Source of the DNA: Octopus bimaculoides
Taxonomy: Eukaryota
Direction of reading: 5' to 3'
DNA length: 41,666 nucleotides
Assembly (NCBI RefSeq): GCF_001194135.2
Contig: NC_068988.1
Location: forward strand, 91,056,371 to 91,098,036
In this document: positions 13,091 through 36,402 of the stretch, in pieces
Position numbering within the stretch: the stretch's first letter is position 1
Layout: every line of letters starts with the position of its first letter
Position numbers and translations under genes: made by a program
The notes under the pieces: generated by a model
The model's database searches: none
What the model saw: only the letters and a program-made list of their open reading frames with translations
What the model was told of the DNA's origin: nothing

Positions 13091-13834
13091 ATGAAGGAAG
13101 CAGCTGTACTGTTCCAAATTGCCACATTGATGGCATGTCTGTATGTCAACGCTAGCACTTTCATCGTCAACAACAACGACACCAACAGCAAAAGCAGCAA
13201 CAATAACAACATTGACGACGATGTCGACAACAACACCAAAAAAGGGACGTCAGAATCTTCAGTTGTTTCATCCAAGATCTGTAACCTGAATTCGTCGCTT
13301 TGTGGAAGCGGCGAAACGTGTGTAATATATGACACTATTTTTCAGTGCCGTACGTTAACTGCCAGAGAACAGNNNNNNNNNNNNNNNNNNNNNNNNNNNN
13401 NNNNNNNNNNNNNNNNNNNNNNNNNNNNNNNNNNNNNNNNNNNNNNNNNNNNNNNNNNNNNNNNNNNNNNNNNNNNNNNNNNNNNNNNNNNNNNNNNNNN
13501 NNNNNNNNNNNNNNNNNNNNNNNNNNNNNNNNNNNNNNNNNNNNNNNNNNNNNNNNNNNNNNNNNNNNNNNNNNNNNNNNNNNNNNNNNNNNNNNNNNNN
13601 NNNNNNNNNNNNNNGAACAGTACTTTTGTAAAACATGTGACAACGGTTTATGTGACTTTGAGAAGGACGGATATATGTCATGTTACTGCAAACGACATTG
13701 GACAGGAGAATACTGCACTGAGCGTTGCCTGAGGAACTGCACAACTGGTAAATGTATTTTGCAAGGAGACAAAGAATATTGCGAATGCCCAGACAATTTT
13801 ACGCCTACATTAAACTGCACAAAACGACACACCG
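13091..13834 (+). CDS. Coding exon 1 of an EGF-TM-TIR receptor: signal peptide, Asn/Asp/Ser-rich stretch, 4-Cys module, two EGF-like domains (spans N-gap 13373-13614)
   Basis: MKEAAVLFQIATLMACLYVNA signal; CKTCDNGLCDFEKDGYMSCYCKRHWTGEYC and CLRNCTTGKCILQGDKEYCECPDNFTPTLNC show EGF six-Cys spacing; phase-1 donor ACCG|GTGAGT at 13835. Confidence 0.85.
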
Positions 13835-14085
13835 GTGAGTCATTCTTTTCATATTTACAGCGATTGTTATCAAATATGTGTGTGTATGCACGCGCGCATG
13901 TATGTATGTATGTATGTATGTATGTATGTATGTATGTATGCATGCATGCATGTATCAAAACAGTTTGACTGAATTTCTGTACTACTTATTCAGTTATTGA
14001 ATAAAAAAATATATATTTGTTTTTTGTGTGTGAGTGCGTGTGCGTGTGTTTCTCTCTCTTTGTTACTATCTCGCTGTCTCTGTCT

Positions 14086-15400
14086 CTCACACACACACAC
14101 TCTCTCTCTCTCTGACTCTCTCTCTCTCTGACTTTCTCTCTCTCTGACTCTCTCTCTCTCTCTGACTCTCTCTCTCTGACTCTCTCTCTCTCTCTGACTC
14201 TCTCTCTCTCTGACTCTCTCTCTCTCTGACTCTCTCTCTCTCTCTCTCTGACTCTCTCTCTCTCTGNNNNNNNNNNNNNNNNNNNNNNNNNNNNNNNNNN
14301 NNNNNNNNNNNNNNNNNNNNNNNNNNNNNNNNNNNNNNNNNNNNNNNNNNNNNNNNNNNNNNNNNNNNNNNNNNNNNNNNNNNNNNNNNNNNNNNNNNNN
14401 NNNNNNNNNNNNNNNNNNNNNNNNNNNNNNNNNNNNNNNNNNNNNNNNNNNNNNNNNNNNNNNNNNNNNNNNNNNNNNNNNNNNNNNNNNNNNNNNNNNN
14501 NNNNNNNNNNNNNNNNNNNNNNNNNNNNNNNNNNNNNNNNNNNNNNNNNNNNNNNNNNNNNNNNNNNNNNNNNNNNNNNNNNNNNNNNNNNNNNNNNNNN
14601 NNNNNNNNNNNNNNNNNNNNNNNNNNNNNNNNNNNNNNNNNNNNNNNNNNNNNNNNNNNNNNNNNNNNNNNNNNNNNNNNNNNNNNNNNNNNNNNNNNNN
14701 NNNNNNNNNNNNNNNNNNNNNNNNNNNNNNNNNNNNNNNNNNNNNNNNNNNNNNNNNNNNNNNNNNNNNNNNNNNNNNNNNNNNNNNNNNNNNNNNNNNN
14801 NNNNNNNNNNNNNNNNNNNNNNNNNNNNNNNNNNNNNNNNNNNNNNNNNNNNNNNNNNNNNNNNNNNNNNNNNNNNNNNNNNNNNNNNNNNNNNNNNNNN
14901 NNNNNNNNNNNNNNNNNNNNNNNNNNNNNNNNNNNNNNNNNNNNNNNNNNNNNNNNNNNNNNNNNNNNNNNNNNNNNNNNNNNNNNNNNNNNNNNNNNNN
15001 NNNNNNNNNNNNNNNNNNNNNNNNNNNNNNNNNNNNNNNNNNNNNNNNNNNNNNNNNNNNNNNNNNNNNNNNNNNNNNNNNNNNNNNNNNNNNNNNNNNN
15101 NNNNCTCTCTCCCTCTGACTCTCTCTCTCTCTGACTCTCTCTCTCTCTCTGACTCTCTCCCTCTCTCTGACTCTCTCTCTCTCTCTGACTATCTCTCTCT
15201 GACTCTCTCTCTCTCTGACTCTCTCCCTCTGACTCTCTCTCTCTCTGACTCTCTCTCTCTCTCTGACTCTCTCCCTCTCTCTGACTCTCTCTCTCTCTGA
15301 CTCTCTCCCTCTCCATGACTCTCTCTCTCTCTGACTCTCTCTCTCTCTCTGACTCTCTCTCTCCCTGACTCTCTCTCTCTCTCTGACTCTCTCTCTCTCG
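14086..15400. repeat. (CT)n microsatellite punctuated by GA, largely a gap
   Basis: CTCTCTCTGA-type units on both sides of the N run. Confidence 0.95.
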
Positions 15401-15524
15401 CTTTCGTTCTTTACATGAGTGTGTGTATGTATATACGGGAGCAGAATAAAACGAGAATTTACTTAAGTGTTTTTATTACAGCAACGTGTATTATTTAATT
15501 TTACACGTATTTCCCTAGCGAACA

Positions 15525-15608
15525 CCAGTACGTTGTCCAATAATCCAGTACGTTGTCCAATAATCCAGTACGTTGTACGATAATCCAGTACGTTGTACGA
15601 TAAACCAG
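15525..15608. repeat. 20-bp minisatellite, 4 copies
   Basis: CCAGTACGTTGTCCAATAAT x2 then CCAGTACGTTGTACGATAA(T/A) x2. Confidence 0.95.
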
Positions 15609-16362
15609 CAGAGGAGTATACTAATTCAATTCGATACTACATACCAAACTAGGTTAGCTGATAGAGCGAGGAAACAAATGTGTGTAAACTGAAGAGAAAA
15701 TTCTTTTTTTATCAATTCAGTTAAGGAGGTAGTATTTTTGTGTTATCTGTGAAATTAAAAGAAAGCAAGTAAGAGGATAATAATGAAGCTCTGTGTCTTA
15801 GAGCAAAAGAGGTTCAATTAAGGTCATAATTGCAAAAAAATAAATAAATAAAAAAAATAAATAAATAAAACCTCTATGGATAAATCGTTTAGAACAGAGT
15901 GTTGTGTGGACAGTATATTAGTTAGGAAAAGGCGGTGAGATATATACGCTGTTAAATTAGCCATGTACACTTGTACATTTATTTATTTATCTACACATAC
16001 ACACATACACGCAGTACACACACGCACAATATTTATATGCACATGTGTTCGTAGATAAACATATATACATATATATAAATAAAAATATGTATAATATGTA
16101 TAATATATATATATATATATATATATATATATATATATATATATGTATGTATGTATGTATGTATATAAAATGTCTGTATGTATTTAAAATTTACCTACAC
16201 ACACACGTGTATATATATATATATATATATATATATATATATATATATATATATATATATATATATATATATATATATATATATATATACACATACACAC
16301 ACATGTGCATATATGTATTTATATATACATATACATATATATATTATCCGAAATGTACAGTA

Positions 16363-34490: not shown

Positions 34491-35257
34491 TATTATTATT
34501 ATTATTATTATTATTATTATTATTATTATTATTATTATTATTATTTATTATTATTATTATTATTATTTTTATTATTATTATTATTAGTATTATTATTTTT
34601 ATTATTATTATTATTATTATTATTATTATTATTATTATTATAATTTTNNNNNNNNNNNNNNNNNNNNNNNNNNNNNNNNNNNNNNNNNNNNNNNNNNNNN
34701 NNNNNNNNNNNNNNNNNNNNNNNNNNNNNNNNNNNNNNNNNNNNNNNNNNNNNNNNNNNNNNNNNNNNNNNNNNNNNNNNNNNNNNNNNNNNNNNNNNNN
34801 NNNNNNNNNNNNNNNNNNNNNNNNNNNNNNNNNNNNNNNNNNNNNNNNNNNNNNNNNNNNNNNNNNNNNNNNNNNNNNNNNNNNNNNNNNNNNNNNNNNN
34901 NNNNNNNNNNNNNNNNNNNNNNNNNNNNNNNNNNNNNNNNNNNNNNNNNNNNNNNNNNNNNNNNNNNNNNNNNNNNNNNNNNNNNNNNNNNNNNNNNNNN
35001 NNNNNNNNNNNNNNNNNNNNNNNNNNNNNNNNNNNNNNNNNNNNNNNNNNNNNNNNNNNNNNNNNNNNNNNNNNNNNNNNNNNNNNNNNNNNNNNNNNNN
35101 NNNNNNNNNNNNNNNNNNNNNNNNNNNNNNNNNNNNNNNNNNNNNNNNNNNNNNNNNNNNNNNNNNNNNNNNNNNNNNNNNNNNNNNNNNNNNNNNNNNN
35201 NNNNNNNNNNNNNNNNNNNNNNNNNNNNNNNNNNNNNNNNNNNNNNNNNNNNNNNNN

Positions 35258-35660
35258 GGACAAGCCTGGACTAGTGGTGTACATTGACTGGTAATATGCC
35301 ATACGGTTTCACCGTTTTGTCCACAGATTCAGCACTTATCACTTTCTGCTGTGTTGTATATTCTGTATATTATGTAGTTTGTTCTTAGTGCTTGCTCTTG
35401 GGCAGCACAGATTAGAGACTCCGTTTCCAGTTTTAAATCACTTTTAGTCATTCACAGCCATCTTTTTTCTCTATCTGTCTTATCATCAACATCCCTGTGA
35501 AATTGACCATGCATTCTTTTCTTTACCCACCGATTTTCAGTTTCATTCGTTTTCAATTTCTTGTGTAGTGCTTTATCTTTGCAATCTTTCACCCTACACA
35601 AGCCTGACCTTCTTACTTCTAATAATAGGGGTTCTGTGGCATTTTTTTTACATACCATGC
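35258..35660 (-). mobile_element. R4/Dong-like LINE fragment (pre-zinc-knuckle and zinc knuckle)
   Basis: KRMHGQFHR, DLKLETESLICAAQEQALRTNY, KC*ICGQNGETVWHITSQC. Confidence 0.85.
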
Positions 35661-35715
35661 TATGTTGTTTTCTTCTGCTCTAAGGCTGGGTTCGCATCCA
35701 ATAAGCCCTCTTCCC

Positions 35716-35935
35716 AAGGCGATGAGCTGACATAATCATAGGCACGCCGGGAAAATGCTTAGCGGGATTTCGTTCGTCTTTACGTTCTGGGTTCAAACTT
35801 CGCCGAAGTCGACTTTGACTTTCATTCTTTCGGGGTCGATGAAATAAATACCAGTTGGTCAATGGAGCCAATGTAATCGACTAGCAACCATCTCCGAAAC
35901 CGCTGGTCATTTGCCAAAATTTGAAACCATCATCA
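35716..35935 (+). mobile_element. tRNA-derived SINE (third family)
   Basis: AAGGCGATGAGCTGAC...GGGTTCAAACTTCGCC...GGGGTCGAT. Confidence 0.8.
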
Positions 35936-36258
35936 TCATTATTGCTAAGAACGGTGTAATGGAATAATCGTTACAGCGTCGGAGAAACCGCTATGCAGTA
36001 TCTGAGTTCTTTACTTTCTGACTTTAAATCCCGCTTTGGACTTGATAAAAAAAAGTACCAATTGACACCTTCCTCTCAAAACTACGGGCCTAAATCAGAA
36101 GCAATTTTATTGTAAGAATCGTTAGAGCTTCGGTGAAGATACCTCATGGCATTTATTTTGGCTCTTTACGTTCTCTGATACTACTACTACTACTACTACT
36201 ACTACTACTACTACTACTACTACTACTACTACTACTACTACTTGTTTTCCATTTTCAG

Positions 36259-36402
36259 AGGAGAAATTATACGACGTATTCATTTCGTATAAATCTTCGA
36301 CTACAGACGAATCTTGGGTGAAAAACATTCTGTTTCCGAAAATCGAAGATGACATGGGGCTGAAAGCATGTATTCACTTTCGGGACTTCGTCCCGGGTGA
36401 GA
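36259..36402 (+). CDS. Coding exon 3 of the EGF-TM-TIR receptor: N-terminal half of the TIR domain
   Basis: TTTTCCATTTTCAG|AG acceptor and GAGA|GTAAGT donor; 144 nt, phase 1-1; (E)EKLYDVFISYKSSTTDESWVKNILFPKIEDDMGLKACIHFRDFVPGE = TIR box 1 plus BB loop. Confidence 0.92.

Follow-up and report, generated by a model that had tools for sequence, protein, structure and literature searches.

The stretch of DNA analysed here, called the window, comprises 41,666 nucleotides of the Octopus bimaculoides genome (contig NC_068988.1, positions 91,056,371 to 91,098,036 of the forward strand), is A+T-rich (37% G+C) and repeat-laden, and contains ten runs of N. With a probability of about 0.9, judged from sequence comparison, it holds the 5' three-quarters of one protein-coding gene, LOC106882184, and the predicted product is, with the same probability, a small type I receptor that carries epidermal growth factor (EGF)-like modules outside the cell, one transmembrane (TM) helix and a cytoplasmic TIR domain, making it a member of the lophotrochozoan EGF-TIR family. 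Exons 1 to 3 lie on the forward strand at 13091-13834, 23225-23380 and 36259-36402, all with GT-AG borders and all joined in phase 1. The spliced product of 265 residues consists of a signal peptide, a stretch rich in asparagine and aspartate, a module with four cysteines, two modules with six cysteines each, the junction sequence KRHT/DTIQ (the slash marks an exon border), the TM helix, the basic segment KRR, MKFAYYFQPYADK/EEKLYDVFISY and, near its end, RDFVPGE. The extracellular part amounts to about 140 residues.

The 5' flank and 5' untranslated region (12894..13090, forward strand) is 82% identical to the upstream region of the Octopus sinensis gene and 77-78% identical to the paralogue loci, and an in-frame stop codon at 13013-13015 precedes the first ATG at 13091. 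Exon 1 is interrupted by an assembly gap. Its first part (13091..13372), which encodes the signal peptide, the asparagine- and aspartate-rich stretch and the four-cysteine module up to ...TAREQ, is 100% identical to residues 1-94 of the O. bimaculoides RefSeq protein XP_014788257.1. Its second part (13615..13834) encodes the two six-cysteine EGF-like modules, identified by cysteine conservation and predicted fold, and ends in phase 1 at the donor G/gtgagt, which is identical in O. sinensis. Exon 2, with 156 nucleotides between ttacag and gtaagt, encodes the stalk, the TM helix (approximately 23245-23322), the KRR stop-transfer segment and the juxtamembrane motif MKFAYYFQPY (23344-23373), which is kept across the EGF-TIR family. 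Exon 3, with 144 nucleotides between tttcag and gtaagt and, like exon 2, a multiple of three in length, encodes the first third of the TIR domain, namely strand beta-A (YDVFISY), helix alpha-A, strand beta-B and the BB loop RDFVPGE (36381-36401). An earlier sequence-only reading of this DNA had proposed three phase-1 GT-AG exons that splice in frame to 265 residues if the gap is collapsed, together with a BB loop that retains its Pro-Gly pair; the exon borders, frames and gap flanks agree with the former, and RDFVPGE is read directly in exon 3. Its count of five ectodomain N-glycosylation sequons must be revised, as N-x-S/T occurs seven times in the product, six of them past the signal peptide.

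The gap within exon 1 (13373..13614) is the sole gap in the coding sequence, the five further gaps of the interval 13091-36402 being intronic, two of them in intron 1 (14267-15104 and 17753-18024). The hexanucleotide GAACAG is present on both of its flanks. In the gap-free locus of an O. bimaculoides paralogue (L002), positions 9805-10288 match the left flank and 10283-10504 the right, with an overlap of exactly 6 nucleotides, and the same 6-nucleotide overlap is found in a gap-free O. sinensis locus (L003; 9821-10297 and 10292-10619). A single EQ stands in ...EQYFC... in XP_014788257.1 and in every paralogue. The overlap of the flanks and the single EQ in relatives therefore indicate that the gap collapses in frame and hides nothing, being an artefact with a true length of about -6 nucleotides. 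Long microsatellites, (CT)n, (CA)n and (TA)n, lie beside most gaps, and a (TAC)n tract is found immediately 5' of the exon-3 acceptor (36177-36243). These repeats are probably the cause of the assembly breaks.

Word-indexed homologue searches returned four and three proteins, and it was an exhaustive search of representatives that exposed the family. A Dreissena protein of 309 residues (P0005) combines an EGF-like module, a TM helix, the motif HYFQAY and a full TIR domain in one chain. When it was used as the query, 5759 proteins were found at E<=0.001; of the cluster representatives, 117 passed E<1e-30, and most of these aligned from the EGF module through to the TIR domain. Members occur in bivalves (Mercenaria, Mytilus, Argopecten, Mizuhopecten, Sinanodonta, Potamilus and Dreissena), gastropods (Haliotis, Patella, Littorina, Elysia, Candidula and Batillaria) and cephalopods (O. 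sinensis, Octopus vulgaris, Argonauta hians and Sepia pharaonis), as well as in the brachiopod Lingula and the annelid Capitella. Among 60 homologues, Pfam identifies TIR in all 60, teneurin-type EGF in 19-24, Delta/Jagged EGF in nine and immunoglobulin (Ig) domains in five. In nearly all of them a single TM helix precedes the motif [YH]YFQxY, which in most members stands about 40 residues from the start of the helix. In an alignment of 40 sequences, the juxtamembrane pattern W-[KR]-x-R ... M-K-x-x-[YH]-Y-F-Q-x-Y-E-D is kept in most members, and the version of the TM and juxtamembrane segment encoded in the window is VWKRRFRFSMKFAYYFQPYADK.

From the 60 mollusc, brachiopod and annelid homologues, a family profile was built without reliance on annotation, reaching from the membrane-proximal EGF module to the end of the TIR domain. 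It gives one match to the window peptide (residues 123-265, 126 bits), which crosses both exon junctions. When the window and two related loci were scanned in six frames with the same profile, exon 2 scored 31.8 bits (E 2e-8) and exon 3 scored 63.3 bits (E 4e-18), and the rest was non-significant. A TIR-like stretch at 23597-23677 (CLFKRDSIPGRTVVSDNILN), also present in O. vulgaris, reached E 2.1 on this profile and was discarded as noise.

The arrangement of exons in a single transcript is provided by O. sinensis, in which XP_036361280.1 (isoform X1, 594 residues) joins the ectodomain exon, the TM exon, TIR exon 1 and TIR exon 2. The window is collinear with the locus of this gene (L004) from about 200 nucleotides upstream of the ATG to TIR exon 1, and the splice sites lie at homologous positions with the same flanking bases: G/gtgagtcatt, ttcttaattacag/, AAAG/gtaagtttc, ttccattttcag/ and GAGA/gtaagtatcga. 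Together with the single 126-bit profile match, the X1 exon chain upholds the proposal of one type I receptor gene combining EGF, TM and TIR.

The internal exons of the O. sinensis gene, like exons 2 and 3 of the window, are all phase 1/1 and multiples of three. In isoform X2 of O. sinensis, the TM exon is skipped in frame and the ectodomain is fused directly to the TIR domain; XP_036361282.1 is such an in-frame TM-skipping isoform. Isoform X3 reads through the donor of TIR exon 1, and the equivalent in the window would yield PGESKYRSVFIVHRLSNNVALV followed by a stop. A further candidate is a cassette exon at 22272..22367 on the forward strand (SSPSGTIFITENRRGYSTSSSRIARHLHPFP; 96 nucleotides, phase 1/1, 100% by tblastn), which is present in XP_014788257.1 only and is used by no O. 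sinensis isoform. Its acceptor is AG in the window, compared with CAC at the same position in O. sinensis and O. vulgaris, and a 37-nucleotide core, AAAACAGGAGAGGTTACTCAACTTCGTCATCGAGAAT, is identical in all three species. This exon is either a lineage-specific cassette exon or an artefact of the gene model. Gene models of the 7tm_7 (gustatory-receptor-like) type cover the entire EGF-TM-TIR locus of O. sinensis on the opposite strand (L004, 3431-39901, reverse strand); no 7tm_7 exon was seen among the stop-free segments of at least 75 residues in the window.

The window holds approximately the first 48 of about 150 TIR residues, corresponding to positions 104-157 of the 264 in the family profile. 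Exon 3 is 92% identical to its counterparts in O. sinensis and O. vulgaris. The last TIR exon (TISNNIIESIQNSRRTLLVLT...) was not found in the 5.3 kb after exon 3, either by tblastn with the O. vulgaris and Dreissena proteins or by the six-frame family profile. In the two other octopuses, this exon (TISNNIIESIQNSRRTLLVLTNDYIDSEWTRMEYQ...TYLQWP...), which supplies the remaining two-thirds of the domain in about 110 residues, is intact (O. vulgaris L001, 13963-14289; O. sinensis L004, 29572-29898) and lies 2.0-2.1 kb downstream of TIR exon 1. The predicted structure of the TIR part encoded in the window superposes on the TIR domains of TLR1, TLR6 and TLR10 at 1.8-2.4 A over 44 residues. For the complete octopus TIR, the nearest PDB matches by sequence are TLR2, TLR1, TLR6 and TLR10 (E 7e-23 to 1e-18), followed by Hydra TRR-2 and IL-1RAcP (about 1e-13), with much weaker matches to MyD88 and to NADase TIR domains. 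The BB loop RDFVPGE resembles RDFIPGK of TLR2, and the BB-loop proline is required for MyD88 signalling in TLR2 and TLR4. In the central part of the domain, outside the window, where a SARM1-type NAD-cleaving TIR would have its catalytic glutamate and NADase pocket, the octopus relatives have SEWTRME and TLR2 has SEWCKYE, so that this motif does not discriminate for such TIR domains.

In the ectodomain, all 12 cysteines of the two six-cysteine modules are kept in 36-40 of the 40 aligned family members. In this alignment, which is headed by the window peptide, C126, C130, C134, C139 and C148 are invariant and the other cysteines of these modules are conserved in most sequences. An EGF sub-profile matches both modules at E of about 1e-5. 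The AlphaFold model of the window peptide has a mean predicted local distance difference test (pLDDT) score of 80.6, rising to about 92-95 over residues 71-150. When the EGF part of the model was compared with the PDB by Foldseek, the best matches were Notch1 EGF 11-13 and EGF 4-7 (110-120 columns, probability 0.9), followed by single EGF ligands. By homology, cysteine spacing and predicted fold, the two six-cysteine modules, which score below Pfam thresholds, are thus classed as EGF-like, and the four-cysteine module looks like a third, reduced unit of the same kind.

Several observations weigh against the assignment of LOC106882184 to the EGF-TIR receptors. No Pfam EGF model rises above threshold on the octopus ectodomains, and with the cut-off relaxed to E <=10 the window peptide still gives none; the O. 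sinensis protein P0159 and the paralogue P0002 are likewise unmatched, and the Argonauta and bivalve relatives match Pfam EGF_TEN and EGF_Teneurin. The Foldseek E value for the EGF part is marginal (about 1e-3), as is usual for such small domains, and the Pfam TIR model, given one-third of its domain, scores the joined peptide below threshold (16 bits compared with a cut-off of 21.3; E 0.011). No single O. bimaculoides model holds the whole exon chain, and the O. bimaculoides and O. vulgaris annotations truncate or split the gene. The introns of the window match those of the O. sinensis X1 locus at 72-82%, a lower level than the 82-89% seen for the neighbouring orthologue pair L002/L003, which makes strict orthology uncertain. 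Finally, no functional data on any EGF-TIR protein were found in the literature searched.

If the product is an EGF-TM-TIR receptor, its mode of action may be sketched as follows. A ligand or partner protein would bind the fast-evolving EGF modules, and this binding or clustering would draw two cytoplasmic TIR domains together. Once paired, the TIR domains could use their conserved BB loop, RDFVPGE, to recruit an adaptor of the MyD88 type, from which a signal would pass to the NF-kB pathway. For the Hydra TRR proteins, recognition through a separate partner protein has been proposed (PMC6321704). Because the ectodomain is very small, at about 140 extracellular residues, the octopus protein might by analogy supply the signalling half of a receptor composed of two parts. 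The chances that the LOC106882184 product signals in an activating, MyD88-type manner are put at about even from its sequence features; the identity as an EGF-TM-TIR protein and this mechanism, taken jointly and weighted to the identity, form a reading that is quite probable.

Instead of sensing pathogens and activating a response, the same protein could serve as a brake or decoy, in the manner of SIGIRR, or could be a receptor for development or adhesion. This possibility is a doubtful one that nonetheless deserves attention, given the very small ectodomain, the occurrence of SIGIRR and IL-1RAcP TIR domains among the sequence matches, and the automatic naming of relatives as draper-, crumbs- or Notch-like owing to their EGF repeats. 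The in-frame TM-skipping isoform and an EGF-only paralogue are also possible decoys. However, the TIR domain keeps the Pro-Gly pair of the BB loop and the box 1 motif, as signalling TLRs do, the closest solved TIR structures are those of TLR2, TLR1, TLR6 and TLR10, and a fast-evolving ectodomain beside a constrained TIR domain is the usual pattern of immune receptors, although none of these points is decisive.

This pattern is seen in the ratios of nonsynonymous to synonymous substitution rates (dN/dS), which in comparison with O. sinensis rise from 0.13 in TIR exon 1 through 0.51 in the TM exon to 0.64 in the cysteine modules, and in comparison with paralogues are 0.69-0.76 for the cysteine modules, all from small samples of 47-100 codons. 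A TIR domain constrained by purifying selection beside a fast-evolving ectodomain argues for a working gene and would fit an immune receptor. The synonymous divergence (dS) of the window gene from O. sinensis X1 is 0.36-0.55, compared with 0.17 for L002/L003, and exon 1 of the window is closer to the short type of the paralogue models P0002/P0003 than to the long exon 1 of O. sinensis. The window gene may thus be a paralogue or a faster-evolving orthologue of the O. sinensis X1 gene, with no effect on its architecture. Divergence above the orthologue level could also be expected of a decaying copy, that is, a pseudogene or truncated paralogue with introns bloated by transposable elements and no full TIR protein in O. 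bimaculoides, and the absence of the last exon from the 5.3 kb after exon 3 would suit this explanation. Intron 2 measures 12.9 kb in the window and 2.7 kb in O. sinensis, and together with its flanks carries fragments of a long interspersed nuclear element (LINE) endonuclease and of Tc1/mariner elements. Decay is nevertheless quite improbable, as the three exons are open, every splice site is intact and conserved, and the TIR exon retains 92% identity at its low dN/dS.

Existing annotations divide the exons differently. The RefSeq model XP_014788257.1 (250 residues) links exon 1 to the TM exon through the extra 96-nucleotide exon and terminates at ...ADKG with no TIR domain; the 3' exon that supplies its final glycine was not found. 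In O. vulgaris, the annotation consists of an EGF-only gene of 382 residues and a TM-TIR model of 211 residues (P0004), in which the TM exon is joined to the TIR exons. Taken literally, these models would describe two separate genes, a short EGF-TM or secreted EGF protein like XP_014788257.1 and an independent TM-TIR gene like that of O. vulgaris. The paralogue represented by P0002/P0003 adds to this case, since it has the EGF exon only, the 10 kb downstream at L002 and at L003 being free of TM and TIR exons. However, the O. vulgaris TM-TIR model lacks a signal peptide, its first residue being a methionine within the TM helix. The TM exon starts in phase 1 right after an in-frame stop; it therefore requires an upstream exon and cannot alone begin a protein with a signal peptide. 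Isoform X1 of O. sinensis links all of the exons, and EGF, TM and TIR stand in a single chain in more than 100 family representatives, leaving the two-gene explanation very improbable. The sequence-only reading had itself raised the prospect that the EGF exon and the TM and TIR exons belong to different genes, and no transcript model places them in genes of different kind.

It had also raised the prospect of concealed exons encoding leucine-rich repeats (LRRs) or Ig domains, of which none was found: exon 1, the reading frames of intron 1 and the complete O. sinensis protein show no LRR, and the window peptide, intron 1 and P0159 gave no Ig match. That LOC106882184 is an ordinary TLR or IL-1R-like gene with LRR or Ig exons concealed in intron 1 or in gaps is almost certainly wrong, for although intron 1 has two assembly gaps, Ig-type exons would be compatible with the 1/1 exon phases and Ig domains occur in 5/60 family members, Pfam gives no match in the stop-free forward-strand segments of at least 40 residues in intron 1 (seven segments consisting of simple repeats only were excluded), the gap-free full-length O. 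sinensis protein (P0159) contains TIR only by Pfam and no additional exons, and one exon holds both the signal peptide and the EGF modules.

At L003 (O. sinensis CM016866.1, about 50.012 Mb), a paralogue with the signal-peptide and EGF exon only lies head-to-head with the EGF-TM-TIR gene, 17.6 kb from its start, and L002 (CM046608.1, about 91.11 Mb) is the corresponding EGF-only locus of O. bimaculoides. This paralogue could represent either a truncated duplicate or a decoy in soluble form. In the P0002/P0003 models, the C-terminal exon (...FYTVFIMPILISVLTNFS..., L002 12624-12743) lies within an interspersed repeat that has further copies at 40571-40973 and 35715-35943 of the window and at the loci of O. 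vulgaris and O. sinensis, so this exon is probably repeat-derived or mis-annotated. Transposon fragments are found on the reverse strand at 16366-16926, 7365-8093 and 37066-37404, comprising one LINE-type endonuclease (Exo_endo_phos) and two Tc1/mariner transposase remnants (DDE_3 and HTH_Tnp_Tc3_2). The start of intron 3 (36403..41666, forward strand) contains Tc1/mariner and other repeat fragments and one 100-N gap. Two open reading frame fragments at 4867-5508 (forward strand) and 26839-27456 (reverse strand) are related, each exceeding 200 residues and sharing ...IRNYN...FGANV..., and are probably copies of one mobile element; neither has a Pfam match. Two open reading frames of Helitron-like appearance gave no Pfam match. 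Between window 23406-24585 and L004 24760-25931, about 310 nucleotides of the window (24274-24585), just past the TM exon and next to a gap, are inverted at 89% identity, and the neighbouring block is direct. The inverted block stems from a small inversion, from a palindromic element or from an artefact of assembly where the gap adjoins.

The architecture itself has been described before. EGF-TIR was a named class in the immune-gene survey of the oyster Crassostrea gigas (Zhang et al., 2015, PMC4346834), and two EGF-TIR genes, LOC101855416 and LOC101856027, were named in the 2022 immunome of Aplysia californica (PMC9334734). The sequence-only reading had suggested that combinations of EGF and TIR were already on record for bivalves and that the novelty might lie in a cephalopod member, and these surveys bear it out. 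Cephalopods are reported to have the smallest TLR repertoires among molluscs (PMC10279657), and cephalopod EGF-TIR genes are unmentioned in the literature searched. LOC106882184 is thus a new member of a known architecture, for which a full-length model already exists in the O. sinensis RefSeq set. The present analysis corrects the truncated O. bimaculoides model XP_014788257.1 and shows that the family, formerly listed in the oyster and Aplysia surveys only, also has members in cephalopods, in a brachiopod and in an annelid, and that its juxtamembrane motif is conserved.

A broader and unlikely view is that EGF-TIR proteins constitute, next to the TLRs and IL-1Rs, a third class of surface receptors with TIR domains that spans the Lophotrochozoa and has the conserved YFQxY as a coupling segment of its own, that the octopus gene is part of a receptor-decoy module, and that its EGF modules bind a pathogen-derived or endogenous cytokine-like ligand. 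If this were true, the role of decoy would fall to the head-to-head EGF-only paralogue and to the TM-skipping or cassette isoforms, which are possible in frame because the exons are all phase 1. As the literature searched gives no ligand or tested signalling output for EGF-TIR, the small and readily cloned octopus member is a reasonable entry point to the role of TIR receptors that have neither LRR nor Ig domains.

The IL-1R family (IL-1RAcP, IL-1RAPL and SIGIRR) has the type I topology and cytoplasmic TIR domain in common with the octopus protein, and some EGF-TIR members have been automatically named IL-1RAcP-like. However, IL-1R ectodomains are built of Ig domains, whereas that of the octopus is EGF-like, and IL-1R TIR domains match the octopus TIR less strongly than TLR2 does. 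Hydra HyTRR-1 and HyTRR-2 (PDB 4w8g) resemble the octopus protein in having a short non-LRR ectodomain, a TM helix and a TIR domain (TIR match E 1.5e-13), a likeness that covers the overall plan and the TIR domain. The TLRs also have type I topology, and TLR1/2/6/10 provide the best match to the octopus TIR in both sequence (E 7e-23) and structure, with a BB loop of the form RDFxPG as in TLR2. They differ in their LRR ectodomain, which is absent from the octopus protein, and the juxtamembrane YFQxY is missing in the one LRR-TIR protein inspected, from a crinoid (P0047).

Molluscan EGF-TIR proteins, by contrast, show the same order of membrane-adjacent EGF-like module or modules, one TM helix, W[KR]xR...MK..[YH]YFQxY[ED]D and TIR, and the window is collinear with them in one profile match. 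The relatives by sequence include the Dreissena 'IL-1RAcP-like' protein (P0005) and proteins of Mercenaria, Mytilus, Argopecten and Haliotis. In many members from bivalves the EGF array is long or is supplemented by Ig or HYR domains, whereas the octopus ectodomain is short, with three modules below Pfam EGF thresholds and a low-complexity stretch rich in asparagine and aspartate. The O. sinensis counterpart, annotated as 'putative uncharacterized transmembrane protein DDB_G0293652 isoform X1' (XP_036361280.1/XP_036361281.1), differs in an exon 1 of 1143 nucleotides with two extra four-cysteine modules and a long asparagine-rich region, and its cysteine modules are 55-58% identical to those of the window. 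It nonetheless shares the plan of four coding exons, agrees in splice sites and phases, and has a TIR exon 1 that is 92% identical.

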